DNA of 63,967 bases, counting the filler, from Pelomyxa schiedti (taxonomy: Eukaryota; Protista; Evosea), in the NCBI GenBank assembly GCA_020536535.1. It is 11 parts of 11 records of this genome, joined end to end, with 100 filler letters (N's around TTAATTAATTAA, not from the genome) between each part and the next. Parts side by side here need not be neighbours in the genome. Positions count along the whole stretch, not along the records: positions 5,652 to 21,304 come from JAHLWZ010001153.1; 10 more parts are not named here. The stretch is one strand, 5' to 3'. This document shows, in pieces, positions 5,652-48,500 of this stretch (its first letter is position 1; each line of letters starts with the position of its first letter). The position numbers and the translations under genes were made by a program. Under the pieces are notes generated by a model. It worked only from the letters and a program-made list of their open reading frames with translations. It made no database searches and was not told the origin of the DNA.

Positions 5652-6962
5652 AATCATGCCAGATGGATGGCAGCTTCTGGAACAACAGCAGGACCGCTTT
5701 GCCTTGGGTGGGATCACTGCAGCCGCCACAGCAATAGGCGGGAGCCCCACCCACTCCCACACCCTCAATGGATCCACTCAGCCTGATGGTGGCCACTCTC
5801 ACGGAAGCTTCGATGGCAGTTTTGGAGTGTACGACGGCTGGGGCCGCGGAGGGCGCCCCGCGTTCGGAATCATTGACAGGAACGGCAGGAATGCGCCTTC
5901 ACTCCGCACGAGTGGTCCCGATGGAATTCACACTCACACCTTTGCCGCCACCACATCCACGGTGAGCAACATCCCTGACTTCATCAAGTTGCCATTTATC
6001 GCATCCAACAGGGACAAGACAAGTGAGTGACAACTCTCCCAATCCTCCTTTTATTCTCACTGACTTTTTTCACAGTGATTCCCGAGAGAGCGATCATTGC
6101 ATGCAGAACCGATTCATTGAACAGGCCCGGGTGGTTATTGTGTGATGGGCAGAATGGAACTCCTGACCTTCGTGACCGATTCGTGCGTGGAAGCAACACC
6201 GGGTTTGGAGAAACCGGTGCAGCCAGTTCCACAACCCACAAGCATGACTGGAGCGCCACAACATCTACCGATGGTAATCACTGCCACACGAGCCTCGGTG
6301 ATTCCGGGTGCTACAAGCGCAACGTGGACAACGGCGGCCTCACTGCCATAGACACGAACGGGCGTGACGTCCCCACGTTGAACACATCGTCAAATGTGGT
6401 CCACAACCACGGCCTGACCGGCTCCACTCAAGTGGCGCCGCCGCTCCCGCCGTTCTGGTCAGTTGCATACTTCATGAGGCAGCCAGGGGCCGGGCCCATC
6501 CACTGCCTGGATGACCTCCCAGAAGGCGTGATCCTCATGTTCCAGGGCGCCCCTGAGGCTATTCCACGCGGCTGGGCCCTGTGCGACGGCAAGGACGGGA
6601 GGCTGAACCTCGTGGGGAGGTTCCTGCGCGGGAGCTCCGCCGCCGCCAGGCCCGACTGCCCAGGGGGCGCCGACGCGACCGTGCACGCCCACGCGGTGGA
6701 CGAGACGAGGATGGTGGGGAGTGGGCAGCACTCGCACAACACGTTCGACCCTGGGTACGGGGTCTACATGAGGAAGATCGTGGGAGGGGACCACCGCGGC
6801 ATCAGCGTGATAGACGCCAACGGCAAAAACCCGGCGGCGTTCGTCACCACCGCGGACGGAGTGCACGGCCACGCCGTCACTGGAGTCAAGACCGCCGAGG
6901 CTGATTCGATGCCCCCGTTCTTCGCCATTCTCTTCCTTCAAAGAACACCCCAGCAGCCGTAG
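5652..6962 (+). CDS. Protein of three tandem phage tail-collar/fibre-tip repeats; 5' truncated by contig edge; one intron at 6023-6075
   Basis: Repeats of P.GW.LCDG..G..DL..RF.RG followed by three HxH motifs and PPF. The intron GTGAGT...CTGAC...CACAG joins ORFs 5656 and 6027 in frame. Confidence 0.85.
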
Positions 6963-7302
6963 TTGTTGTTCACCAAGCACAGGCGCTGTTGTTTGCGATT
7001 CAACACCAACACACTAACAGCTGTTCTGAATTTAAAATCAAATGAAATAATTTGTCGATGTTTTCTACCTGACTCCACTCCAGCACCGTCCAACGACCAT
7101 CGGATCGGGGTATCGCCACTTACGCTCGTACGGGTTAATCTGGGAAGACATTTTGTTTACAAGTCTGTAAGGAGTTCTGGCAAATGTCAAGTAACGACCT
7201 TGAGACCGTACACCCTGTGTCCGAAACATCACCCCGTTTTCAGGGAAGGTTCTTGGAAGAGAACAGTTTTAATATTTCAGAAGCGGTTAATAGTGATTTA
7301 TT

Positions 7303-10300
7303 GTGATGGAAGTTGTTGGGTGTTTTGTGTATCGACCAGACACGCGCGTTGTCCTCGCGTCCCTTGTCAACCAGAAATCAAGCCTCGTCGTGCCCAGAGA
7401 GGCCTCATTCTTCGCCCTATGTTCCTCAGCACTCCTCGACTCTCCCATAATACCCCGCGGGGAGCCGTGCACCGTCGACACTGCCCAGCCGTCGCCGTCA
7501 CCAAAGCGGCACGGCTCCGACTTTTACCAGGCGGTCAAACAGACCATGTCGCTGGGCACCGAATCCCCGTCGAGCACAGTCGCCGAGATCCCGTGGGAAT
7601 CTCTGTCCGCGATCGGCGTCCCTCCCCGCGACGTTTTCTTCGTGGCCGCGGCCGTCCCCTTTGACCCGCCGATTTCGTCCGGCGAGCACGGCCCACTTTG
7701 GGTTGGTGTCGTATCTACGAGGCCGGTCGCTGGCGGCTTACGCGAAGCGGAGCGGGACTCTCTGGTAGTCAGGAGTGTGCTCTATGCGGGGAGATTTGAG
7801 CTCCAAGTTGAACTCATTCCTACTACTACAGAGATGGTATTCAGCATTTGGGTTACAAAAACACAAACCTAAATTTAAAAAATACTCAAAAAATAGAGCT
7901 CTGAAAAAGTTGCGTTCAGTGACCACGTCTAGTGGGCATTGTTCTACTTCTCTTACAATACTCTCTAGAGCTATCCTGCCAATGTGCGGCATTTAATGGA
8001 AGTATTTGTAAATCAGCTGACAATTGATGAAGAAGAGGGAGTGAGGCAGGAAGAAATGTGTGGCTTATTCCATGAAGAAAACCGAATTCCACTTGTTTCA
8101 GTGCAGGTCGAGGTAGAAATTTTAGATTTCATTGCCAAGGTATTTTCACTCAAGGAGCGTGCACTGACAGTAACCACCTGTAGGTTAATCTAAGGCACAC
8201 CTACGTTAATCATGGCGCAACCCATCCTATTGAATGCATTTTCTTTTTCCCACTGAGTGACAAATCCACAATATGCAAGTAGGTAATTTCGATTTCGTAA
8301 TGTCTTACAATTGACCAAATAAAGGTTCTTTGTTGTTGTTGGAGGCAATACCATCAACGGAGTTTTAGAAGAGAAAGGGAAAGCAGAAAACGTGTATAGT
8401 GATGCCATTTCCTCGGGACATAGTGCCTTTTTAATCGAATACATCAGTGAAGGTAAAGTGTGCTGCTCCTAAGTTTCTGTCACTGATTCTCTTCAAAAGA
8501 TCTGTTCAAAGCAAGTATCGGCAACCTCGCTCCAAAAGAGGAAGTTGTTGTAAACATAACATATCTTTGTGAGCTAGGTACTGGCAAGAATAATTCCGTT
8601 TTTCATCTCCCAACCTCATACACACCGAAATATCAGACAGCATTCTCCCCACCTGAAGAGCCATCAACCTCCTCAGTGTGCGACTATATCGTCACCATGG
8701 CAGTCACAATACAGAATAGCACGCCTATTACTGGATTGAGTTGCCCCAATCTATCTGATACAAAAATTTCCAAACATATAAATGGTTGTACTGCAACGCT
8801 CACAGCAAGGTTATCTCCAGGTGACCTCGCACATGACTTCACATTGTTGATTGCTCAAGACAATGTGACAACCCCAAGAATCTTAATTGAGCGTGATACA
8901 GTGAATGTAAATTCTCTGGCCGTAATGATAACCCTCCAGCCAAGCATTGTAACCTCTACTGTCAATTCCGAGATTATTTTCATTGGTACCATGAACTAAT
9001 TATTTATTCAACAAAGGCTGAGTTCTCACTTTAACCAAAAAACAAAAAAAGTTGACCAATCTGGAAGTATGCTTAATACAATTTACTATGTTTCCCGGGC
9101 TTTGATACACTTTCTCTCGATTTTACCACCGGAATGCATGTTTAACATCATTGGATTTGGAACTACATGGGGGAGTTTATTTCCCAACAGTGTGTTTGCC
9201 ACTTCTGAGAACCTTGTGGCGGCAAAGAGGCATGTGCACTCCCTAGCAGCCTCTCTTGGCGGCACAAATATATTGGAACCACTGAAGCATGCCCTTGGCT
9301 CGGCTCCAATTGAAAATTACAGCAGACAGATAATACTTTTCACTGACGGTGCTGTTGATAATACCCAAGAGGTTTGCGAGTGTGTGAGACAGAATTGCGG
9401 GGATTCCAGAGTGTTTGCGTTTGGTTTAGGTGCCGGCGTCTCCAGAAGTTTGGTAAGAGGAATTGCGTATGCCGGGCATGGACAAGCTGAATTCATTGCA
9501 CGTTCCTCTGATATAGAGAGTTCTGTCGAAGCTCAGTTAAGTCGGGCTCTGGAATCTGCCCACACACAAGTCTCTGTCAGATGGGATGGGGACCATCCCT
9601 TGTGGACAGCACCAGCACATATTCCAGCTCTGTTCAACAATTCCAAGGTTGTTCTGTATGGAGTTTTTGCAAAGTCTCTTCCACTATCTGGAACAGCGAC
9701 AGTATCAGCAAGAGGCACCAATACAAGCAAACCAATTGAGTGTATGATCAACTTCGGAGGTCTTTTATTTGGGTTTTTTTATTATTTCGAAACTAACGTA
9801 TCACAGAGTCAACACCGCTTACAAGTTGTATCATTCACGCCTTGGCAGCAAAAGAGCGTATATGTGACCTAGAATTCCAAGGAGAGAGTGCAAAGGAGCA
9901 AGTTATCGCCATTTCTAAGCAATATAGCATTCTATCGAAATACACTTCGTTTGTATGCATATCGAAGCGTACCTCGGCAGTCACTACATCTATGCAAACG
10001 CATCACATTCCAGTTGCAAAGCCAACATCAACGTACGGGCTCGCCGGACTTGTTTCCTACTTACTCTTCCAGGGCTATAACAGGTTGCGTTTGTTGGAGA
10101 GCTGCCTCTATTGTATACAAGAAAAATGAGCTCCTTCTTGACTTTAATGAGCATGTGATTGTGCAAATATCACCTGCGAACATTGCCAAGTGCAGTGAAG
10201 TTTGGCTCGGTACCACTAAATAAGCTCACAAAATCAAATGTAAGGTCTGTGGAAATGTTGTGGCAACTTCTCGTCTGTCTTATTTCCCTGAAGTCAAAAT

Positions 10301-11001
10301 GGCATTAGCTGGAGGTGAACTTGGAACTGCTTTCCTCTCTGAATCAAATTCCACCCACCAGTGTGTAAGGTGGCGCAATGTAGTGCCAGGAGCACCAGTG
10401 TTTAACTTTGAATTTACCCCGCCGGATGGAAAGTTTGAACTGATGACTTATCACCTTACCCCACCACCAACTCACCCTCTCCCAGTGAATGCCTCTCTTG
10501 TCTGGCAGCCTGTCAATAGGTTCACCATTAAAATCAAAGCACACATTACAACCGGCACATGCTCAGCGCTCTCCACTGCAACCAACAAGCCAACACCGAA
10601 GGGGATAACTCTGGTTCTTACTGTTCCGGGATGCATTTCTGTTCCCTGTAAGTCACGTCATTCCGATGGAACTGTTGCATTGGATGCCGGGAATCAATGC
10701 GTACATTGGATACTCAAATCGGCAGCCTGGAACCATTCCTACTCCAGTGAGTTCACTGTTGACATTGCCGAGGAAATACATTCCCTTCCTCCAGCCGAAG
10801 TAAACTTCACAGTGAGCATTCCACCCCTCCCGTAATTCGTTATTTCCACTGACAGGTTTCTCACAGATAAGCCAGTGGCTCTTCACCGGAGTTCACGTTC
10901 AACAAATTGACGTGATAGGAAAAGGCCTTGAAAAAGTGACCAAAATGGCTCGGTTTGAAACCACAGTCACAATCCACCTCCCTTGCACCAAGGCCACTTA
11001 A
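7303..11001 (+). CDS. Multi-exon fusion: unknown N-terminal domain + VIT + VWA (VWA5A-like) + mu homology domain
   Basis: VIT: HPIECIFFFPL..GVLEEKGKAENVYSDAISSGHSAFLIE..FKASIGNLAP. VWA: IIFIVDQSGSM, LGGTNI, ILFTDG, VFAFGLG. VWA5A tail: SKQYSILSKYTSFVCI. MHD: SYFPEVKMAL, HQCVRW, FTPPDGKFELMTY, VHWIL, VNFTISQWLFTGVHV. Confidence 0.75.
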
Positions 11002-11057
11002 TTCGTAATCAAAATTTTCATTACGTCCTTTTTTTTTTTATCAGAATTTGGTACCAA

Positions 11058-11910
11058 ATGACTGCCACTGAAGTACCACGACCGAAATTGGACGAAGAGA
11101 CGTTCAATAAAGTAGTAAAACTGCTTCGACGACCCACAATTACAATGTGTTAAGAGCGTCTTCAACCCTGTTTAAGCCTGTTTGCTTTTCGTCGAGCTTT
11201 CAATCGTAGTGTAGGTTTGTGACTTTGTGGAATGTGAAACGGACGAAGAATGTAGAGACTTTTTACAAAAGAACCCATATTTAATACAACAACCTGTTGT
11301 GCAAGCCTTGTTTGAAAGAGGTTGTTCCCAGCTCCATCCCTACAAAACGAAACAATTGGTCAAAGATATGAATGTATTTGATATTTGATCCGTAAGTCAC
11401 TAACACAAAATTTCCTTCCCTCCTTATTTGTATCTTCTCAAATTGGACCTTTCAATGCAATAGCGTTTGTAACGTTTCCGACTCACCCTCGTGAATTTCC
11501 AAGGAGATTTTTGAGGAACGGTCAAATGCTCAAATGGATGTTAGATCTTCAAGCTGCTACGGGAGGCCAACAAGACATCACTCTCTTCTTTCACAGGTTC
11601 GTGAAAAACCAATAAAAATATTCTGGTCTAATGTAATCCCGTTTGTTGCGGCAGGCTCATGAGTCCCGATCCTTCTTTCAGGACTTGGTTCGAGTCACAA
11701 GTAGATGACTTAATGGCCGGTATCTCAATCTCGATTCGCACCCTTGTTCCATTCACCATTTCACACCAAAACAGCACTAGAAAGAAAGCACAAGACTCCC
11801 AAACAAACAACCCAGTGTGCAACTCATCGTTCCTAGAATCTTGCCTAGCCTGTGGTGTGGTCCCACACCGTACCTCCAAAAGATCCAAAAAACATTTCTC
11901 CGAAATCTGA
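11058..11910 (+). CDS. Cdc37 middle (Hsp90-binding)-domain-like protein, multi-exon (3' end approximate)
   Basis: ECRDFLQKNPYLIQQPVVQALF...GQMLKWMLDLQAATGGQQDITLFFHR.LMSPDPSFRTWFESQVDDL aligns by eye to the Cdc37 M domain (SQKYLSDNVHLV...QFILELAK...FRQFFTKI). Confidence 0.5.
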
Positions 11911-12033
11911 TCAGACCACCCAACAACCCCGATCGAGGTTCGTCAAAGTCAAACAAACGCACAGGGAAACACCGGAATTCGCACCGGTAGCCAAACACAA
12001 AACACCGAAACACAAACAACCAAACAAACAACG

Positions 12034-12713
12034 GTGACATCGCCATCTCCCATAATGATGCTGGGTTCGGTGGGCTTGGGGCGATTATGCGCGGCGGACG
12101 GGAGCGGCTTCGGGTGGTGCGCGTGGTGGTGGGTGTGCTGCGTGGCAGGAAGCGCATTATGGGCCACCATAGCCACGATTGGCAAGCCCGCGGTAGTTCT
12201 CGCCGTGACTGCCTTTCACGTGGTTCTACACGTTCTTCTGTTGTGGCTCCGAATGCCCTTCTGGCAATGTACTTTTCACTTAAATTTCATTTTTTTAAAA
12301 AAAAAAAATTAAGTTGCCGTGTATAATAATAGGAGGAACACAAGCTCCGCATCCTAGTACAAATAAAAACAAAACCCTCGGAATAACAAACAACAAGAAA
12401 TCGGATTGGGATTTGGGGATGTCTTCTACCTATTTAGATTGTGTTTTTTGTCTTTTCTTTTCCCCCTCTGCTTGTCGTGATTTTCGTTTTTCCTCCAATA
12501 GATGTGGAACATTGGTACTTGACAACCCTGAGTGCATTTACATTCACTTGGTTACTAAGCGTCTTCTGGACAAGGCAGCCCCTATCTAAAAGAACTCTGT
12601 TCATTGCGAACAAGGACACCAACGTGCACGCCTCTGCTATAACCACCAGCCTCATTTATGCCATAGTTGGTGCTCTTGTATACACATTTGCCTGGCTGTT
12701 TGGATGGTGGTGA
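12034..12713 (+). CDS. Small multi-pass membrane protein with weak PIG-F/Gpi11 resemblance
   Basis: Hydrophobic exons FHVVLHVLLLWLRMPFW, LPCIIIGG, YLTTLSAFTFTWL and SLIYAIVGALVY. The PIG-F PLDW motif is absent. Confidence 0.35.
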
Positions 12714-12907
12714 TTGCACAACCCACTCACAAAATCCCCAACAACACACCCCCTTTGACCTTGATTTGGTTCATTGACCAAAGTACAAACCTACACCTAC
12801 ACTTATGCTGATTTCAACAAACCAAGCAAACCCCCAAACCACACCAAGTTTCTTAATTTCTTCTTGTTCCTAGTAGATAACAGATCCGTGTGTAAATAGA
12901 CTCCGTC

Positions 12908-14227
12908 ATGATGCAACAGCAGCCCGGAGTTGGTGGCGTGGTTGGTGTTGTGCCTGCGCAGTACCAACAAATGCCCGTGTCTCACCACATCCAAATGCAG
13001 CCAGGCCCAGGCGTCGGCGGAGGGGGCGTGCCTCCCTCCATTATGGGAGCGGCGCAACCACCCCCGCCCCAACCCGTTATGGCCCTCCAACAACAACAAA
13101 TGCAAGCCCAACAACAGCAACAACAACAGCAGATGCAACAAATGCTGGCACAACAACAACAGATGGCACAAATGCAGACACAACAACAACAGCAGCAACA
13201 GCAACAGTCAGCAGGGTATCCTGGTGTGGTTATGGGACAACAACAACAACAACAAATGCAACAGGCACCGCAGTCACAGCCACAGCAGGTCACTTATGTG
13301 GCTCAGATGCAGCAGCAACAGCCTGCCTCGATGCAACAGGTTATCCAACAGGGGAATTCCGCTGCCCAGGCACAACAACAACAAATGCAGCAGCTGCAAC
13401 AGCAGCAGCAAGGGCAACAGCAAACACAGCCGCAGACACAGCAACAACAATATGTCAATGTGGGTGGGCAGGCACAACAGCTAAAGCAGGACACCCAAAT
13501 GAAACAAGAAATGGTGGGAGGGGCACCTCAAATTAGACAAGAAACAACACCTTGGAACCAGCAGCAACTCCAGCACCATCAACAGCAACAAATGATGCAA
13601 CAACAACAACTTATCCAACAGCAACAGCAACAACAACAGCAACAACAGCAGCAACAAGTAATAGCCCAGCAACAGCAACAGCAACAACAACAGCAGCTGG
13701 TAATGGCGCAGCAGCAACCACTAGATCCACTCTCAGCCAGGACACTGGCAGTAAAGGCATCACTGTTCAACTGTGTGAAGTCCGTATACCTGTGCCTAAG
13801 TGACACCCCCGGCGGCGGCGGCGGCGGCGCGGGCGCGGGGGGCTCCTCGCCGTCGCCGATGGTGGGGGGCGTCGGCTCCCCGACCGCGGCGGCGGCGGCC
13901 ACTTTCCCGCAGTACCACCACCCGGCGTACCCGTCGAACCCGCCGACGCAGGACCTGATGGCCAGCGTCGCTAGGTTCGACCTGGGCTGCGACAACCTGT
14001 ACCAGCTGTTCAACACGCTCAAGATACTGACGCCGCAGAGGGCGCAGAAGCTGGAGGAGACCAGGCTGGGGTTCGAGGCACTGGCCAATGACATGCACTC
14101 GTTTGCTGCGTCCCTGGCTTCCCCTGATGAGCAGCTGCAACAACAACCTGGCTCTGGGGGGCTGTCTGGGGCTGTGTCTTCTGCCTCTGTGGTAGTACCG
14201 CACACTACAGCAGACAGAAAGTCCTGA
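12908..14227 (+). CDS. Poly-glutamine protein with a short helical C-terminal domain (possible Mediator tail subunit, Med29-like)
   Basis: Single 439-aa ORF with CAA/CAG runs. C-terminus LDPLSARTLAVKASLFNCVK...ARFDLGCDNLYQLFNTL. Confidence 0.7.
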   Translation: MMQQQPGVGGVVGVVPAQYQQMPVSHHIQMQPGPGVGGGGVPPSIMGAAQPPPPQPVMALQQQQMQAQQQQQQQQMQQMLAQQQQMAQMQTQQQQQQQQQSAGYPGVVMGQQQQQQMQQAPQSQPQQVTYVAQMQQQQPASMQQVIQQGNSAAQAQQQQMQQLQQQQQGQQQTQPQTQQQQYVNVGGQAQQLKQDTQMKQEMVGGAPQIRQETTPWNQQQLQHHQQQQMMQQQQLIQQQQQQQQQQQQQQVIAQQQQQQQQQQLVMAQQQPLDPLSARTLAVKASLFNCVKSVYLCLSDTPGGGGGGAGAGGSSPSPMVGGVGSPTAAAAATFPQYHHPAYPSNPPTQDLMASVARFDLGCDNLYQLFNTLKILTPQRAQKLEETRLGFEALANDMHSFAASLASPDEQLQQQPGSGGLSGAVSSASVVVPHTTADRKS

Positions 14228-14419
14228 GAAAAAAAAACCCTTTGTTTCGGTTATTGTGTCCGGGCGTCGGAGCTCATCTCCGCAACATCTCCTCAGTTCT
14301 TAGGTGAAGTCATCAGAGCTCACTGTAGTTCCGTGGCCATCGGGCAAAAAACAGAGGAGCCTTTGGCAGCGGAAGTGGACTTCCTGTGGGGCGTTATGGG
14401 ATGACTTTTTTTAAAAAAT

Positions 14420-17058
14420 ATGCAGTTTGGAGGCAGGCTTGGAGCTGGTGGTGGCGTGCGGTGGAGGCAACACAATCTCAGGTACTTCAAGATCAAGAGA
14501 GTACTCTCTCGTATCAAGGCAGCTTACTCGTCGTCGGGCGTCTCGATGGCATCGTCGGCGGGCATGAGGCTCTCGTCCGCGTGCCGTCCCATAATGGACA
14601 CCACCCCGTTGGACGTTGTCGAGGAAGAGGAGTGGGGGAGGAGGCCTTCCCACAATCGTGGGACGCGAGGGAGTGAAGTCGACCAAATTGGGGGCAACAA
14701 GGACGCGTTCTGGAGGTTGGTGCGCGAGGATGTGAGGACTGTGAATACTTTCTTTGAGGGAATGTGTGCTGATGCCGCTGCCAAGGTTGGTGTTCGCTGT
14801 TGTGTACAACATCATTAATTATGGGTGTACTATTCCAAAACCACCAGGTTATGCACCAAAGGAAACTTCAGGATAACACTCAAATGATTGAGGCATATGA
14901 AGAGCTGTTGCACTTGAAAGATTACGTTTCATTGAATGTTGAGGGATTTAGGAAAGTTCTCAAGAAGGTATTTTTTTTTTTTTTGATTCTTTGTCTTTCT
15001 AAGCAACAATGATCATCAGTATGACCACATAACTGGAGAAACCTGGGGCGCACAATTCATTGAGTCTCTGAAGAAACAGCCTTTTTATTCTTGTCAGCAC
15101 GTAAATACTCTGATTTCTGAACTGGAGGCCCTGAGATCACCGGAATTCTTTGCCGTTGTGAAGATCGAACCCACCAGTCAAACTAAAGTTGACAAGCTGT
15201 TCCAATCAAGTCATTTCATATAATATGTTTCAGGTGCATTTGGTCACGCCGTGGATAAGACTCCTACTTCTGGCTCTCTCATGCGGCCTTGGAATACTGG
15301 CGTTCTTCACCCCTTTCGAAAATGTAACTTCAGTCTCCGTCTACCAAGCACGGATATGTTTTTCCATGTTCATTTTCGTGTCTTCTCTGTGGGTGTGTTA
15401 TATATGCATGACATTCTGCAAGCTAATAAGTGCTTTTTTTATTTCAGGTCACACATGCATGCCCACTGTTTGTTGCAGGACTTCTTGTCCCTGTTCTCGT
15501 TGTTGTACTTGGACTCAAGTTTGACCCGCATGTTCCCCAAAATCATCCCGACGCAGGCAGTCACTCCTTCTTGTACTTGTACAGCTTGGTGAGGGAAAGT
15601 CCTACCGGCAGTGATGACCAAGTTTCCATGCTTGCCAGGGAGGTGCTGGGTTCGTTGTTCAACAACGTCAGCATGCTGTTGCTCAGCAGTTATGCCCTTT
15701 CTGCTTGTTTGAGGTGCACCCGCTCTGCAATTTCTTGACCACCTCCTTTTTGATAGTTGTAATACTCAATGTACATTGACAGCCGGTGCCAAATTGAACG
15801 GGACATATGTTACAAACTGCATCAGCGACTGGAAAATCACCCAAGACTTTTCCTCCTCGGTGTTATGATAGTCTCTACTTTCATATCGTTTTGGACGAAC
15901 AATGTACACCTGATTGACTCTGATTGGAGAAGTGGGAATTTCAATTTTCTTTTGCTTAATCAAGTTTCACTGATGTGAGCCCTGCAGGTCACAGGGTCAA
16001 CTTTAATGGTGGCCACTCTAATGCCACTACTGCGGGAGCTTCCAACAACATCCACCTACGCTCGCGGTCTCCTTTTGGGGGTTTCATTTGGTTGCAATCT
16101 GGGTGGAATGATCACACCTGTTTCTTCACCACAAAATGTAATTGCCGTCATGGCTCTTCAACTGCAGCAAGGCCAACACCGCGAGTTGCTTCAATTTGGC
16201 AGCTGGGTGCTTGTTGCCACGCCATGTGCCTTCGTTCTCTGCGGTGTATGTTGGATTTCACTGGTTCTGGCATTCCCTCCAGATGTGAACCGGTTGCCTG
16301 CCTTCATAACCACGGCGAAGACCTCTCAAGGAAAATTTCAGAGCAAGACCACTCTTGCTCTTTGCGCTACACTGGCTGCGGTTACCGTGACTATTTGGCT
16401 CTGTGACTCACTTGTAAATCCCTTTCTAGGTGGTTCCGCTATTGCTGGCTTGGCTTTCACTGCACTTGTTTTTGGAGTCGGCGTTCTGACTCAAGCTGAT
16501 TTAAATTCCTTCTCCTGGCATATAATACTTCTTATTGGCTCAGCAAATGTGCTGTACTGTGCTCTGGCTTCAAATGGAATTCTATCCTCTGCAGATGAAT
16601 TCCTCAGCGGGATACTAACAACCAGCCGCTTTGGGACTGTCTCTCTAGTTACGTTGCTATCCCTGCTTATGACCCTATTCAGCGCAATTGCATCACACAC
16701 GTCCGCGGCACTTGTCCTCATGCCCTTTGTTGCTGCTGTTGAATTGAAGCAATGCCGGCGGTGCACACAATCTCACGCGGCGGAATCACTGGAATCATTG
16801 ATAGCGCTACCGGCAACAGCACCAACTTCACCACCCCTGATGTGGGGATGCACACGGGCTGTGTTCGTGGCTGCAATGGCAAACAGCTGCGCGATGTCAT
16901 TCCCGTGGGTTTCATTCCCAAACATGAGCTCATACACGGTGGTGGATGACATTGGGAGGAAATACTTGCGCACTAAGGACTTCATCTTTGTTGGTGGGGT
17001 TGTTTCTTGTCTTGCCAGTATGTTTGTTGCCCTGTACTGCTACTTGGTGTTGCTGTAG
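14420..17058 (+). CDS. SPX-domain SLC13/CitMHS-type phosphate transporter (Pho87/90/91-like)
   Basis: SPX: MQFGGRL..W...LRYFKIKR and LKDYVSLNVEGFRKVLKK|YDH. Transporter: GVSFGCNLGGMITPVSSPQNVIA, SHTSAALVLMP, SCAMSFPWVSFPN. Confidence 0.92.
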
Positions 17059-17281
17059 ACCAGAAAAAGTGATACAATCTCGCTAAAAAAAACTATTTTT
17101 GGCGCACACTGTTGCGGGAAATCCCCAGGGGTATTCCTTGGCGGTTTCATCACCAAGATGTGGTGCACACTCACCCAAGATTATGGGAAGTTACCTTGGT
17201 TGCTCACCACTTCAAAATAAAACAAAATTGGAAAACAGGTTTGATCAGCATTTTTTGAAAATTGTGGTAACACAAGTCGTA

Positions 17282-18582
17282 TCAGTGTCCAAGGAGGTCC
17301 TTGATGTGAGCAATGGAAAGTGCAGGATTGAGTTTTTTGGGGCACGCTGGTGTACAGTTCAGGACTGTGTGGCATTTGAAGACTGTTTGTATGATATGTG
17401 TGTAAGTGGTGACAGTTGTTTTGAAAGAAAAGAGCCACCTTTGAAGTTATCTGTGTCCAATTCTGCAAGTCGTTGTTTCCTTTTGCTGTCTCTTGAGTCT
17501 GATATCCACCGGTAAGCCTCAAGACATTTGGGTCAGTATTCCATGCATGTGTGGTGTGGTACTACCTGTTGAAGAACACTTGGGCCAAGGTAACGTTTGT
17601 CACCACCCTCAGACCACCAAAAGCTTGGGCATGATGTGGAGCAGCACGCACACAGTATGCACTCGTACAGACTGTCGAGGCGCTTGCGCTGCTCTGGACT
17701 CTGTGGAATCTATTGTGTATTGCACAAATGATGATGAGTGCGACATTTGCGACATTTTTCATGAGGAAAAAGGAACTAAAGGTAACAGAAGGTTACCTCT
17801 GTTTTCAAAGCTTGTTGCTCAGGTGTAAGCTCCAGCCACGGCTTGATAGATTTCAAGTGTTTGTAGAATCCGGACATGTCCGTCACCAAATCCTGCGTTG
17901 ATTACCGTGAAAAGAGAAAAATATATTTGAGGTGGTTGTGGGATCACACTCACCCTTATGACAGGCATGTGTGGCAGTGGTTTGATATTCACAACACCGT
18001 TCTTTGTGCAGTCAGAAAGTTTTGTGATGCAGGCCAGTCCATTCGTCCCGCTGTCACATTAGTTATTAGATTCAACATACAAAATGTAACCAAACAAATA
18101 AAACAGGGGGAAAAAAAAAAAAACACCCTAACAATCAAACAAAAAACAAAAGGGGAAACACCAACAATAACACCCCTGACACCCAACCAAAATGATAACA
18201 ACAGCAACAAACAACTACGATAAACCCAAGATATGAACTTGATGTTCACCGCACATGATCCACAAATCCCCTCGCGGCAGCTTCGGCGAAACGACAGCGT
18301 GGGGTCGACCGTCTTCTTCACGTGCATCAGCGCGTCCAACAACATCGGCCCCCCGCACTCGTCTGGGTCCACTACGTAGTTGGACGCGGTGGCGCGCACG
18401 CGGTTATGGGAGGAGGTGGTGGTGGTGGTGGAGGTGTCCGGCTGCGGTTGCTGTTGTTGGTGGGATCTGAAAACCCTGAGAGTCACTGGCAGTGTCTGTT
18501 CGCGACACGAAACGTGCATGAACCGCCACACAGACGACGTAATCAACCGGTTGGTGTCGATGTGCCCCACGGTGCCCAGCAT
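17282..18582 (-). CDS. SDHB: Succinate dehydrogenase/fumarate reductase iron-sulfur subunit
   Basis: [19 protein letters not shown]|..[15 protein letters not shown]|[41 protein letters not shown]. All three Fe-S motifs are present across introns. Confidence 0.97.
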
Positions 18583-18724
18583 CTTTTTTTTTTTCCTTGT
18601 TCTCCGAAATCACCCGACATACTTGAACGTCGCAGTGACGAGGCCTCGCCAAAAAAGCTAAAAAAAGCCAACACAAAGTGTATGGACAACTAGCAGTTAT
18701 TTGGCTTCTCAAAAAAAAAAAAGC

Positions 18725-20329
18725 CTAAGAATTGAATGTTGTGAATGCCTGCCAAGATTTGCTCCAGAATGCCTTGAGAATTGTGACCTGTTCATTGCTT
18801 TCTGGGGGCAGGAACAGAGATGCATGTTTTGCCGTGACAAGAATGGGCTGACTGTGGGATGTTGTCCTCCTCAAACGATTTATCTGAATGACATCTCCCT
18901 TCCTCAGGAGGTTGGTGATAGACTCAGTGGCCAGCCAGTCCCTCAACTCTATGCCTAGAACCATGCCCGAATTGTCAGCCAGATAAAGCATCCTGGGTAA
19001 AAAAAAGTTAAGCACAGCCTAGAAGGCAGGACAGCAAAAAGAATAACCTTTTTGTCTCTTCCATCCGACGTCCCCTATTGTCGGTATACTTCAGACGCTC
19101 CACAGGTGTCAAACAAACCACAATGCCCATAATGCCTGCAAGCCGATTCCCCAAGTGAGTGTTGTTGTTATAATTTTGGACTCATACGGTGTAGGGTGCC
19201 TTCAGCTAGATTGTGCAGTGGACCTATACGACTCACTGGCCAGGGTTTAAGTATTCCATTGTAAAGCCTAGAAATTTGGCTAGCCGGGGTCAACTTAATG
19301 TCCGCTGGGGCCTGAGGTGTTCGCTCCCGCTCTGCGCAAGGAGCAAGAGAGAAACAGGAAATCAGAAACACCTATGGTAGGGGTAGAATAGGCTGAGGCT
19401 GCGTTGGTGCATACATCTCCTGGCCAGAACTCATTCATCATCGGAACAGTATCCTCAAACCCGACAATCCTGACTGTAGTGCCCTGCGTCAGTGTTACTC
19501 CGAACATGTGAAGTAGGGAAACTGTACCTCACAATCTACAGCCAGTGTAGAGCACATTCCCCCTGCTCTTCCTTTTCTTGTTGTGAAGCTTTGATATCTA
19601 TTCATCTCCGTTATTTGAAGTTGCACATGCTGCTCTCTGGTGTTAGTGCCACTATTCAAAGATCTGACGGCTAGCTGAAGAGTGCCTAGTTCCATTTTAC
19701 TGCTTTTACTGGGAGGAAAACCGGCCGCCACAAAGTGGACCCTTTTCACCAGGAGAATGGAATTCCTTTTTATTGTAAGAGAAGTAAAAGAAAAAAAAAA
19801 AAGAAAAAGAAAGCGAAATAGCACACCCATTATTGAGATGGGACATGATCCCCTCTTTGCACCGGGAGAGCTTAAACCAATACCCTCGCTGAAGCATGAC
19901 TTCACTACGCACATAGCAGAATCGAGTCTCCTCCTCATTACAGAAGACACAGTTCCACACCCTCGGACTGTCAGTGGGCTCGATGGAGATAAGGGCCATT
20001 GGCTTCGGGATGTGAACACGGCGGAACTGGTAAATAGCACCGTCCGCACCCTTAAGGACAATGGGTGCCGACACAGGCGCCTGCTTGTCCGACACGTCGG
20101 CAAAGCTCTCAAGGTCAATGTCGAAATCGCACTGAAAGTCGCACGAAATGTCGGAGCACAATTCAGGCGGTGCGTCCGATACAAAACCAGGAGGCTGAGG
20201 CGATATTTGTTGCTCAATTGGGGGTGGTGCAGGTTGGGGCACGGGGACCAACAACGGCGTGACAACGTGTGGGTCCGCGTGTGGCTGGGCGACGAGAGAC
20301 AGCGGGTCGGTTGCGTTCCCTGACTTCAT
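18725..20329 (-). CDS. Divergent RPA1 (RPA70)-like OB-fold protein with DBD-F, DBD-A and DBD-B but no visible DBD-C
   Basis: F: PMALISIEP..RVWNC..HLNNGNSILLVKRV. A: QITEMNRYQSFTTRKGRAG..LAVDCE.TTVRIVGFEDTV. B: GIMGIV..TK|RMLYLADNSG..LFLPPESNEQVTILKAFW. Confidence 0.7.
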
Positions 20330-20612
20330 TTCGGTGGCAACGTGACGATACGCAGAGGTGAAAACTTTTCAAAATTGTCTCCGTTTTACTCAGATCTGGT
20401 TTTTCAATTGAAGACGTGAAACCGGTTCCGAACAATTGAAACCTTCTCGCCTTCGCCGAGATTAAACCACACGTAATTTTCAAACTACGCACAATAGCCA
20501 CACCGGCACACGAAAAGCTAGGTACACACCCACTGCCCCACAAACGATTTTTCTCAGTTCGCCACGCTACAGGTACCAAAACCCGCAAAAAGACTTCCGT
20601 TTTTTCGTGTTT

Positions 20613-20898
20613 ACTTTGCCTCATGCACGATTTAATCCAGACTTTCCTTCCCCCGATTGTTGTGGAATCCAGACTTTGCCTCATGCACGATTTTTTGGTG
20701 CTTTCTTTTCCCCCTTCCTGAGACCTTTGCACATGGTATTACAGCTACTCCTCCCTTCCCTTTTGCCATTCGTTTATCACTTACCAACTCTTCTCCCCAA
20801 TAAAATACAGTTTTGGTTTGTTGTACTGTTCTTTTCTTCCCGACTTTGTTGCGCAAATCCAGACTTTGTTGGCCTTATTATTACCAACTCTTCTCCCC
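20613..20898. repeat. Cluster of short interleaved direct repeats
   Basis: ACTTTGCCTCATGCACGATTT at 20613 and 20673; AATCCAGACTTT at 20634, 20666 and 20856; TTACCAACTCTTCTCCCC at 20781 and 20881. Confidence 0.9.
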
Positions 20899-21304
20899 TT
20901 AGACTGACTCTTTTTCACCCTTTGGTGCTCCTATTTGCCTTGGGAGGTATGTTCCCTCCTTCCACTGTGCCCTGCCTTTAAATCCTCTTCAGTTTTACAG
21001 TGGTGAATAACCCGGCTCTGCAGCTTCATATACTTCCTGTCGTCTCATTTTTTTGGCACAATGTGACGTCCCCTCCCAAATAACAACCTCTAAGCTGGAT
21101 CTCCTGATTCAAAAAGTTGATGTACTGACCGACCTTGTGCAACATTTACCCCAAGTCCACAAAATGTCCAGCTGCAACCACCTCAATTTTTATTTTTCAC
21201 ACAAGAAACAGCTCCACGGTCCCGAAGGGGCACGAAAGGCGGAGACGACGCAGGCGTGTGGGTCGCGGTGGTTGCTCCAGTTATGGGTGACTTACTGCCG
21301 CTTT

Positions 21305-44982: not shown

Positions 44983-45402
44983 CTTCACAGCAGGCAATGA
45001 CTCCCCCCAATCACGACGTTGTTCGCCCGCAACTGCACAACAATCTCGAGTTGTTCCATTTCTTCTACCCTCGGTATCAGTTGCTTTGTCATTGTTGCAG
45101 TTGCAGCTGCTGTGGTTTTTGTCACAGCACGGCGCTTCCCTGTTGACTACGAGCCAGGCGACACAACGGGGGGCAGGGACACTGGCAGCACTCGTGATCG
45201 CAGAGTATCGAGACACGTTTCTAGATCGGCACAGCGCGATTGCCCTGGAGCACACGACCCCGACCAGGGGGAACATCGCCTCGCCGACACTGAACAGGTC
45301 CAGGTTGTGGCGCCAGTGTTCGTACTTGGACTTGTGGTCGTCGAGCCAACCAGGTCTCACCACCATGTCCAACACAACCCGTGAAACTTCGAGAACACGC
45401 AA
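44983..45402 (-). CDS. Ankyrin-like expanded family, N-terminal part (3' partial)
   Basis: LEVSRVVLDMVVRPGW..FSVGEAMFPLV..AITSAASVPAPRCVAWLV matches the N-terminus of the 22955 gene. Confidence 0.65.
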
Positions 45403-45586
45403 CGAAAGGTCAATACCTGGAAGTAATGTTGTTGGCGCAAGTACTACCAGAGTGATTATGGGACGACAGCTACGTACGGTTGCTTGACGCCAAGGCCATC
45501 ACAATCAACAACAGAAATTTTCAGCGAAGGGGGGAAGAAATCGATTCTTTTTGTTGTTTTGCAGACGAAAAGCTCGGTTGGGCGTC

Positions 45587-48500
45587 TCACCAGTGTTTGG
45601 CTGACCTTGTGTTGTTGTTCAGAGGGGGATGTGTGGTCTTTGGTCTCTTGGGTTGTGGTCCTGTTGGTTTGGGTTCTGATGATGGTGATGGTGGTGATGT
45701 AGTGGGGGTTGCTGCGCTTGGTGGTTGTGTTTGCTTTGTGGTTTTTATAGTAGCTAGTGCAGTCTGGCCAGGAGGTGGCAACTCTTGCAGGAGGTTACCA
45801 CCAAAAGAGTTGGGGTTCGCTGTGGATGTGGTGGCTTTGTTGGATGTGGATGCCGATGAACCAGCTCCTAGGATTTCAGTGTTCTTGGAACACATGGCAG
45901 CTTCATCCTTGAGAATTGACTGAAACTGTCTGTCTTCTGGTGGTTGTCTTTTCACTCGGGTTTTCCTTTTTGCAGGTTGTTGTGGGGAAGAGACTGCTGT
46001 TGGTGTGATGGGTTTCAGTGACAACGGGGTTGTGTTTGTACTACCGCGATGCTGTTCCTGCTGTTGTCGATAAGATTGTAATGATGTGAGTGTTGTTGAC
46101 TTCCTTTTGATTGGTGGCTTGGATGTGGATGTGGCTGCAGGTGTGAGGGTTGAACTTGAACTTGTGGCTGTGGGATGTTGTGTCTTGGTTGTTGGATGTT
46201 TGACAATTGCCCTTGACACCTTCATTTGTTGTGAAAGTTTTGTGAGCTTGGCACCCATCCTCCATTCTGGGTGTTCTTGAAGCACAACAGCACATTTCTG
46301 AATAGCCGTCTCTGACGATGCCTTGGACTCTGTGGTTCTCTCTGTGACTGTGTGGCTGAATGTGCCAGAGGACACTGGGTGTGGCCTGTAGGGTCTCTGG
46401 TGTTTCTGGTGGTTTATTCCATGCAGAATTGTTTTTTGTTGGAGGCATTCAGCCTGTGTAATGAGGCTGGGGACATGCTGCGAGCACCACTGATACAATG
46501 ATGAACATGGTGTCAACTTGAGATTGGAGTGGATGTGCTCGACACACCTGAGCCCAAGCCAGGCATCTGCCGCAGCATAGATGACCTTTTTATGGTATTG
46601 TTAGGTCAGACAAGGGCAGAGGTGGTTCTATTAAAACCATAAACATACCCCTTTGTTGGAGATTGTTGGTGACAACCAGTCTGTTTCCAGTTCCCGAAGG
46701 GTCTTGGAGTGTCCAATGAGTTCTTCTGAAATGCGTCCCAGTGATCTGATGTCTTTTTAGCATCTGGGGTGTGACGAATGGACAACACCCACAGGTAAGA
46801 TGCAGCCAAGTGGAGTTCCATGCAAGCCACTGAGACATCCCAAACACCCTGACAGTGAATGTGGTATTGCTCATCCAATTTCTCACAATCAGAAATCAAT
46901 CCCACGCCACACTGAGATTCAATGTGAGAGAAACACTAAGGGCAAGTGAGCATACCTTCAAAATCTTTGGAGACTCAAGAAGCTTCTGCAAATTTGGTGG
47001 TAACTCTGTTTGCATTTCACCCATCATCAGAACCAAAACATCATGCTTGGTGTTCCCGTTATTGTGACCAGTAAAAGCAATCTGAATTGTGCCAACTCGT
47101 TCGTTGTGTCCCTCAGTGTCAAACCCCACCACCATTCCTTTCTCTTCCTCTTCCTCACTGGCACAACAAGAGGTAGAGCGCGGCTTTCCAACAGCAGTAC
47201 TGCTGCTGTTGACAGCAGAAGAATCTTCAGTGAACAGGAATGGGCAGTATTGTATAATCAGAGCTTCTATTTCCTTGAATGCCTTCTCCTTAGTTCCACT
47301 GGTGATGAGGACCCGCCATGAGTCATCATCAGCCGTCAATTCCCTCAGCCCCCACGACCTCTCTTCAGGTGGTGATGTCACTGACAAACAAAATTCCTGG
47401 TCAGGTGATAATAATAGTACTGGCTGATGATGTAAACAGGGCTCCTGCAGTTCCTCTCCAAGCTTTGTAACCTCGTCTTCATCCATATTTGGGTGTGTGA
47501 CTGTGTGGCTGAATGTTCCAGAGGATACTCGCAGTGGTGTGGGGTGCTCTTCTGTTTTGAATTTGTTGTGTCTGTCTTCCAGGAAGGTTTTTTCCATTGC
47601 AATTTCAAGGCTTGGAACATGTTGCGAGCACCACTGGAATAGTGATAATGGGGATGAGGATTTGGCATGTATCTGCTCAGCACACATGAGGCCAAGCCAC
47701 GCATCTGCCGCGGCATGGATTACCTGAAAGTTGAGTGAGTAATGTTCCACGTTGTGGAGGTGAGGTACCCCTTTGTTGGATATTCTTTCTCCATGCCAGT
47801 CTGTTTTTTCACAAAGGGTACTTGTGTGTCCAATCAGTTTCTCAGAGAGTTGCCCTATTTGCCTGGCGAATTTAATTAATTGCCGGTTTGAGTTAAATAA
47901 ATTCTTACAAATACTCTGTGCCCAAGTGGAGCTCCATGCAAGCCACTGATACATCCCAAGCACCCTTGCATTTGATGTGGTATTGCTCATCCAGGATTTG
48001 AAAATCTTCAGCCACACCCACCCCACACTACATGATTGATTGATTGTGTGAGAACAGTGAGTGAAATATTCAAACTAGAGGAGGGATGAAATGAACAAAC
48101 TTTTAAAATCGTTGGAGACTCGAGAATCTTCTTCAAACTGGGTGGCAACTGTGCCGGCATTCCTCCCAGCAACATAACCAAAACGTCATGCCTCGCGCGT
48201 CCGTTCTGGTGTCCCGGAAACGCAATCTGCACCGTGCCTACGCCCCGTGGCGCACCTGTCGTGGCGGGTCCCCTAATGGCGAACCCGACAACCATCCCGG
48301 CTAGAATGGAGCGGCAGTACTGCGGGATGACTTGGTCCAACTGGCGGCGGCCCAGGACCGGGTACACCCCGTTTGTGGCCAGTGCCCTCCAGGAGTTGTC
48401 GTCGGCCCTCAGCTCCCTCAGGCCCCACGACCTCTGTTGGTCCGGCAGTGCTCCCGACAAGAAAAACGGGTCGCATTCAACTGCTGGCGACGGGGTCGAC

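Follow-up and report, generated by a model that had tools for sequence, protein, structure and literature searches.

The stretch of DNA analysed here (the window; 63,967 nucleotides in 11 joined parts, along which all positions are counted) comes from Pelomyxa schiedti, a large, phagocytic, symbiont-filled anaerobic archamoeba. We found that positions 7306-11001 of the plus strand are one spliced, expressed ten-exon gene for a protein of 1057 residues, in which a VIT domain and a VWA domain are followed by a mu-homology domain (MHD) of the type carried by the medium (mu) subunits of adaptor protein (AP) complexes. With a rough probability of 0.6, we favour the reading that this fused protein is an accessory trafficking or endocytic adaptor, similar to stonins or muniscins, over the reading that it is a core AP mu subunit. 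The gene lies on C1153 (JAHLWZ010001153.1; window 5652-21304), a 15,653-base contig contained whole in the window, from a 52-Mb assembly of 5337 contigs. The P. schiedti genome paper (PMC8887013) reports an intron density of 7.43 per gene, along with transcriptomes obtained from single cells by Smart-seq2. Our gene model is based on RNA contigs from four single-cell runs (X1 to X4), aligned on window 6800-12500.

The RNA joints define nine introns within 7306-11001, all of which have GT..AG ends after permitted boundary shifts: 7837-7968, 8140-8183, 8279-8324, 8453-8499 and 8986-9051 (introns 1 to 5), and 9760-9806, 10033-10072, 10200-10244 and 10812-10866 (introns 6 to 9). Removing them leaves a single open frame of 1057 codons, from the ATG at 7306 to the RNA-supported stop codon at 10999-11001. 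An earlier note, made from this sequence alone, had read the VIT-VWA and MHD regions as continuous, with no intergenic gap, and the frame bears this out. The phase-0 intron that it had placed at about 7836-7968 is real, as joints in two runs (X1 and X2) skip the 132 bases of intron 1. The junction of greatest interest is crossed by X1 record 5 (1043 bases), which contains the end of exon 5, exon 6 with the MIDAS-bearing part of the VWA domain (MIDAS, metal-ion-dependent adhesion site), exon 7 and 41 bases of exon 8; these 41 bases encode AITGCVCWRAASI, the beginning of the mu-derived part. As this one RNA contig joins the VWA exon to exon 8, where the MHD begins, the VWA domain and the MHD belong to one gene and not to separate transcripts, which the earlier note had named as grounds for refutation. 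Further contigs connect exons 7, 8 and 9 (X3 record 15) and exons 8, 9 and 10 (X1 record 6), and the joints 10032>10073 and 10811>10867 were present in three and in all four of the four runs, respectively.

The VIT-VWA portion was delimited by Pfam matches, for which the public protein model P0001 was the query, as in all our whole-protein searches; the joined RNA-based protein was used for the frame check and for local tblastn against two same-genome loci. VIT corresponds to P0001 residues 219-330 (1.9e-29; profile positions 1-111 of 111), the VIT_2 and VIT matches beginning at residues 212-219, and VWA_3 corresponds to residues 445-597 (6.5e-23), with additional matches to VWA_2 (1.3e-09) and VWA (3.9e-09). 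An exon-by-exon Pfam search likewise returned VIT fragments in 8184-8550 and VWA_3 at 2.6e-21 in the frame 9000-9869. On the DNA, exon 2 (7969-8139, codons 178-234), which X2 record 9 spans from 7968 to 8137 with joints on both sides, encodes the final helix predicted upstream of VIT and then the VIT start (MCGLFHEENRIPL, at ~8059). The VIT domain (8092-8562) extends over exons 2 to 5 and is interrupted by introns 2 to 4, and exon 5 (8500-8985) runs from its end through the VIT-VWA connector to the opening strand of VWA. The VWA domain (8970-9492) has intron 5 inside it and retains a complete MIDAS, composed of DQSGS (9054-9068), the T (9264-9266) of GGTNI (9258-9272) and the D (9345-9347) of FTDGA (9339-9353). 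Exon 7 (9807-10032; RNA joints 9757>9805 and 10032>10073) encodes a C-terminal segment that is conserved among VIT-VWA proteins, where KYTSFVCI (YTSFV, 9941-9955) closes the unit. A motif of this type lies near the end of the core in other VIT-VWA proteins (YTSFV in P0003, YTSFL in P0007, YTSWL in P0005 and YTSYL in P0008), and because the segment terminates the unit, we regard the unit as complete and not a fragment. All of the parts that the earlier note had listed (VIT, a MIDAS-intact VWA, a VWA5A-type C-terminal segment and an MHD) are thus located on the plus strand by Pfam matches and motif coordinates.

The same order of VIT, MIDAS-intact VWA and C-terminal YTSFV segment is found in VWA5A (BCSC-1), PARP4 and proteins of the inter-alpha-trypsin-inhibitor type. 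VWA5A and PARP4 are intracellular members of the VIT-VWA proteins, and the fused protein, as they do, lacks a signal peptide. Its nearest VIT-VWA relatives in the database share 23-29% identity with it; none of the nine hits has an MHD, and all four relatives inspected have a hydrophobic, signal-like start, whereas the fused protein does not. The highest mean hydropathy over 19 residues is 1.45, as expected for a soluble protein without a membrane segment. A cytosolic protein is favoured because there is no hydrophobic segment and no signal-like start, and because an MHD is present. Copines (C2-C2-VWA) are cytosolic proteins in which a VWA domain that holds protein partners is combined with a module for membrane targeting; the fused protein resembles them in this module-plus-VWA plan, with the MHD in place of the C2 domains, as an analogy that implies no claim of homology.

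A link of 27 residues follows the C-terminal VIT-VWA segment and leads to the mu-derived part. The MHD (10077-10998, from AITGCVCWRAASIVYKKNELLLD to KMARFETTVTIHLPCTKAT) is encoded by exons 8 to 10, with introns 8 and 9 inside it. The earlier note had called this region an MHD, and Pfam agrees: Adap_comp_sub (PF00928) matched P0001 residues 768-1020 at 5.2e-29 (profile positions 2-246 of 259) and the single frame 10224-10832 at 5.3e-19 in the exon-by-exon search. Among solved chains, the best relatives were AP-1 mu1 (2.5e-14; chain residues 152-401) and AP-2 mu (4.3e-12), followed by AP-3 mu (1.3e-07) and AP-4 mu (E=1). The 27 matching chains were all AP-1 to AP-4 mu, except for one unrelated chain at E 0.12, and no chain of FCHo, SGIP1, Syp1, stonin or delta-COP was among them at E<=10. 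The mu-derived part opens at the mu linker motif VTGxxxWR..YKKNE (here AITGCVCWR..YKKNE), the alignment with the AP-1 mu1 chain begins within the linker, at AITGCVCWRAASIVYKKNELLLDFNEHV, and the C-terminal 275 residues are homologous to mu1 and mu2 over the whole MHD from that motif onward. Judged by these alignments, the MHD clearly descends from a genuine medium subunit of an AP complex. Scores against mu1 and mu2 are too close to choose between them as its origin (56 versus 49 bits for this gene, and 22.8 versus 20.5 for its paralog on contig C238, described below).

We take AITGCVCWR to be equivalent to VT156GQIGWR of mu2, with the aligned T as T156, and the pocket for tyrosine-based (YxxPhi) signals to consist of F174, D176, W421 and R423, in mu2 numbering. 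The equivalents of D176 and R423 are kept in this gene, while F174 is replaced by L ('knellld' versus 'knevfld' of mu1 in the HMMER alignment to the solved chain) and W421 by M, the C-terminal KMARF lying opposite PWVRY of mu1 and KWVRY of mu2 from the same genome when aligned by eye. The C238 paralog has A at the F174 position and I at the W421 position. Because two of the four pocket residues are changed, the signal read by this MHD is probably not a standard YxxPhi motif.

Public annotation had captured the fusion imperfectly. An NCBI record with the automatic name 'Adaptor complexes medium subunit family [Pelomyxa schiedti]' is 100% identical over the MHD exon, and P0001 (1164 residues) agrees with the RNA-based model save at two places. 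It splices out 8577-8639 in exon 5 and thereby loses 21 residues, SVFHLPTSYTPKYQT; X1 record 3 is unspliced over 8547-8775, contradicting this intron, and the skipped residues correspond to IRFFIPTTYFPRYNP in the C238 paralog, a conserved stretch of the VIT family. P0001 also splices from ~10957 into the gene that follows; it thereby gains 129 residues matching Cdc37_M and loses KMARFETTVTIHL, the counterpart of the last strands of the same-genome mu1 and mu2. Three RNA contigs, X2 record 14 (10867-11029), X3 record 16 and X4 record 18, are unspliced through 10957 and reach the stop codon or pass beyond it. The public gene model is thus corrected by restoring the 21 residues and removing a false merger with the Cdc37-like neighbour. 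That neighbour, at window ~11058-11900, is interrupted by an intron at ~11319-11461 that the RNA supports, and it matches the Cdc37 Hsp90-binding domain (Cdc37_M, 3.6e-06).

Canonical mu genes, each divided among many exons, exist elsewhere in the genome. A genome scan with PF00928, combined with the search of solved chains, identified separate genes for AP-1 mu (C993; 2e-35) and AP-2 mu (C821; 1.2e-27), and the scan detected additional loci of mu type, which lie on C106, C942 and C970. We had labelled the C106 locus mu4 and the C970/C942 loci mu3, and dropped both labels as the solved-structure search was not supportive. The C942 and C970 loci are nearly identical, with the same exon pieces (e.g. 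VTGAVAGSSSVS..MPWRRDGV.Y.NNE), and may reflect a recent duplication or separate assembly of two haplotypes.

At two more loci, on C238 and C242, a VWA domain is closely followed by an MHD. The C238 locus is an intact-looking paralog at ~35% identity; from VIT through to the MHD its order is the same, single pieces being 31-53% identical, and it has the motifs DRSGS, GGTEI, TDGD, KYTSFVCV and MVTGAVSWRAEGCRYKKN. Its alignment breaks within a few residues of the C1153 exon borders 234/235, 265/266, 308/309, 781/782 and 824/825; near the borders 470/471 and 706/707 the agreement is looser. These shared breaks indicate that the structure of the fused gene is older than an old duplication. The C242 locus (~45380-47100, minus strand; L035 4388-6094) is a decayed copy, 55-87% identical in pieces, in which the frames are broken and both the MIDAS segment and the central part of the MHD are deleted. 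Because the downstream Cdc37-like gene was copied along with it, we interpret it as a decayed segmental duplicate.

The C242 copy, together with the two mispredictions in P0001, one of them a false merger, might suggest that the C1153 gene is itself an expressed pseudogene, a chimera of recent origin already in decay, or else an artefact of assembly or annotation that merges two neighbouring genes. We find this scarcely credible: all ten exons are open, the introns are removed in RNA and have GT..AG ends, the MIDAS and the core motifs of the MHD are intact, and one spliced RNA contig passes from the VWA exon into the MHD. The second intact copy, at ~35% identity and with the same breaks at exon borders, argues that the fused form has long been retained.

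The region of ~207 residues upstream of VIT is lineage-specific. The earlier note had proposed a longin-like N-terminus, and our searches did not uphold this. Residues 1-218 matched no Pfam family at E<=10, Clat_adaptor_s being absent from the C238 paralog as well, and no solved-structure sequence at E<=10; neither N-terminus gave a usable hit in the ESM Atlas, and a genome scan with PF01217 (Clat_adaptor_s) did not match contig C1153. Against a profile of four same-genome mu-type N-termini (C993, C821, C970 and C106), hmmsearch returned E 0.16-0.19 and hhalign a probability of <1%; profile comparison as a whole spanned E 0.16-0.43. AlphaFold, run on the single sequence, gave predicted local distance difference test (pLDDT) scores of 36.6 (exon 1) and 33.4 (residues 1-218); these low-confidence models show a beta-beta-alpha start, as in longin, followed by four strands and one helix, not three strands and two helices. 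Comparison by blastp detected no similarity between the N-termini of the C1153 and C238 proteins (E 0.79).

Composition also sets this region apart. Exon 1 (7306-7836, codons 1-177), which encodes the N-terminal region and is Ser/Pro-rich in its middle, is unusually GC-rich, at 60.6% GC and 68% GC at third codon positions (GC3), versus 40-48% GC for exons 2 to 10. It resembles the upstream neighbour gene (61.8% GC) in this respect, and ordinary mu genes have 44-50% GC in their first exons. The N-terminal exon of C238 is likewise GC-richer than the rest of its gene (54% versus 45-47%). A separate origin or fast evolution fits the composition of exon 1 better than an old conserved longin does, and the composition also leaves room for the possibility of a partly untranslated exon 1.

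An accessory role is favoured over that of a core AP subunit because no similarity to longin is detectable and no AP complex is visibly short of a mu subunit. The protein also departs from the AP plan in its proportions. AP mu subunits total ~420-450 residues, with ~20 residues linking longin to MHD; unlike mu1 and mu2, the fused protein has ~550 residues of VIT-VWA upstream of its MHD and no detectable longin domain, and its 1057 residues include ~575 (VIT-VWA and links) between the N-terminal region and the MHD. Stonins, muniscins (FCHo, SGIP1 and Syp1) and the MHD proteins of TSET/TPLATE likewise carry a C-terminal MHD on a non-adaptin body, and their MHDs are cargo- or hub-binding modules of accessory adaptors. 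Unlike in stonins and muniscins, the MHD here is of AP-mu type and the body is VIT-VWA instead of F-BAR or a stonin N-terminus. For the fused protein, we propose that the MHD would dock on the tails of membrane proteins, on lipids or on coat hubs, while the VWA domain would hold a second partner through its MIDAS metal, which would bridge to an acidic residue; the protein would in this way connect a VWA-held partner to a sorting step.

Several observations weigh against the accessory-adaptor reading, and the first group of them would fit a true AP medium subunit in which a longin, strongly diverged, forms the N-terminal 207 residues and the ~550-residue VIT-VWA portion was inserted into the mu linker. 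The mu-derived part begins exactly where such an insertion would leave it, at the last linker residues, in both paralogs. Both also have a long in-frame region upstream of VIT (longer than ~207 residues in C238), with an intron ~35-45 residues before it. The low-confidence AlphaFold models predict a terminal helix in addition to the beta-beta-alpha start, and the C238 N-terminus (VIWVALVSNNTP..VSELVMCIIQSFEKEYG..INKDHRVELTLLVDAIACGDTPETS) recalls strand 5 and helices 2-3 of mu by eye. As the N-terminal region is without a confident fold model, assembly into an AP complex may be possible; the product would be an AP-1- or AP-2-like core with a MIDAS module beside its cargo-binding domain, and C1153 and C238 would provide it beside the ordinary mu1 and mu2. 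Set against this are the Pfam, profile and structure-prediction results given above for the N-terminal region, the lack of detectable likeness between the two paralogous N-termini, the deviant composition of exon 1, and the presence of canonical mu1 and mu2 with no complex visibly lacking a mu subunit. We therefore consider a core medium subunit to be possible but unlikely. Of the proposals in the earlier note, the non-canonical trafficking adaptor stands as the most reasonable reading of a single VIT-VWA/MHD gene, while the medium subunit with an insertion in its linker is a less likely possibility.

The other observations on this side concern the assignments and data on which the accessory-adaptor reading is built. 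The C-terminal residues of the pocket (W421 and R423) were assigned by the alignment by eye. The four RNA runs derive from one sample of one study, as assembled contigs, and are probably the same data that lie behind the public annotation; no single RNA contig from X1 to X4 spans the whole gene. On exon 1, the RNA contigs cover 7392-7835 only, leaving uncovered the first 86 coding bases (7306-7391, encoding VGCFVYRPDTRVVLASL).

This gap in cover bears on where translation starts. Exon 1 could be largely or wholly 5' untranslated region, with the start codon further 3', such as the Met of MCGLFHEEN at ~8059, and the protein would then consist of VIT, VWA and MHD only. VIT-VWA proteins usually begin at about the position of this Met, and the start of human VWA5A, MVHFCGLL, would put the ancestral start there. 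Exon 1 is also without a homolog, family or confident fold in the searches run, and at a GC content so close to that of the upstream gene, chance open frames arise more easily; its other two frames are open for 105-154 codons. Nonetheless, all 177 codons of exon 1 are open and lead in phase 0 into exon 2, a stop lies just upstream (three codons) of the ATG at 7306, GC3 exceeds the overall GC, and a long in-frame upstream exon is kept in C238. A second allele of the 5' end of the gene, on contig C3969 (1-679, 679 bases; L037), is also informative: it has 2 differences in the first 241 coding bases, both of which change an amino acid, versus many mismatches and indels in the 140 bases upstream of the ATG. 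Taken together, an exon 1 that is largely or wholly untranslated is improbable.

The remainder of the contig contains several other open frames. Upstream of the fused gene, window 5656-6962 has two intron-free frames (124 and 311 residues; ~62% GC, GC3 75%) with repeated His-rich motifs, a borderline match to Phage Tail Collar (3.1e-05; 24.3 bits, with a cut-off of 24) and a weak match to YmaF. These look bacterial or viral, and may represent a transferred gene in this symbiont-bearing amoeba. Downstream, window 12908-14227 holds an open frame of 439 residues that is extremely rich in glutamine runs and has no Pfam match. Open frames matching a transporter of the CitMHS / Na-sulfate symporter type (16006-17058, plus strand; 2.9e-15) and a 2Fe-2S Fer2_3 domain (17989-18582, minus strand; 8.8e-13) appear to be unrelated to the fused gene.

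We searched for the same combination of domains elsewhere. When the main MHD exon was compared exhaustively with a library of 1.84 billion representative proteins, only the gene's own model and one spurious repeat protein were recovered, though single-sequence sensitivity is low at such a library size, even the C238 paralog was not recovered, and the result is no proof of absence. Word-indexed searches with P0001, and with its MHD part in the full-protein length range, returned no other protein pairing VIT or VWA with PF00928; a stand-alone MHD query found nothing and missed ordinary mu subunits too, and is hence insensitive. A scan of JGI metagenomes gave no relative. In the literature searched, no paper paired 'mu homology domain' with 'VWA domain', and the Pelomyxa and Mastigamoeba genome papers mention neither adaptors nor VWA. 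As far as these searches reach, the fused gene has no relative in any other organism, and the fusion is a new and undescribed domain architecture of known parts.

The contexts in which an MHD is known are AP mu subunits, delta-COP, the MHD proteins of TSET/TPLATE, stonins and muniscins, and every new context so far has exposed a separate route linking cargo to coats. Because the fusion is kept in two old paralogs, it points to a real, selected function. If the N-terminus were a longin after all, the mu linker would be shown to tolerate an insertion of 550 residues. The P. schiedti fusion offers a test case for the re-use of adaptor parts outside animals, fungi and plants.

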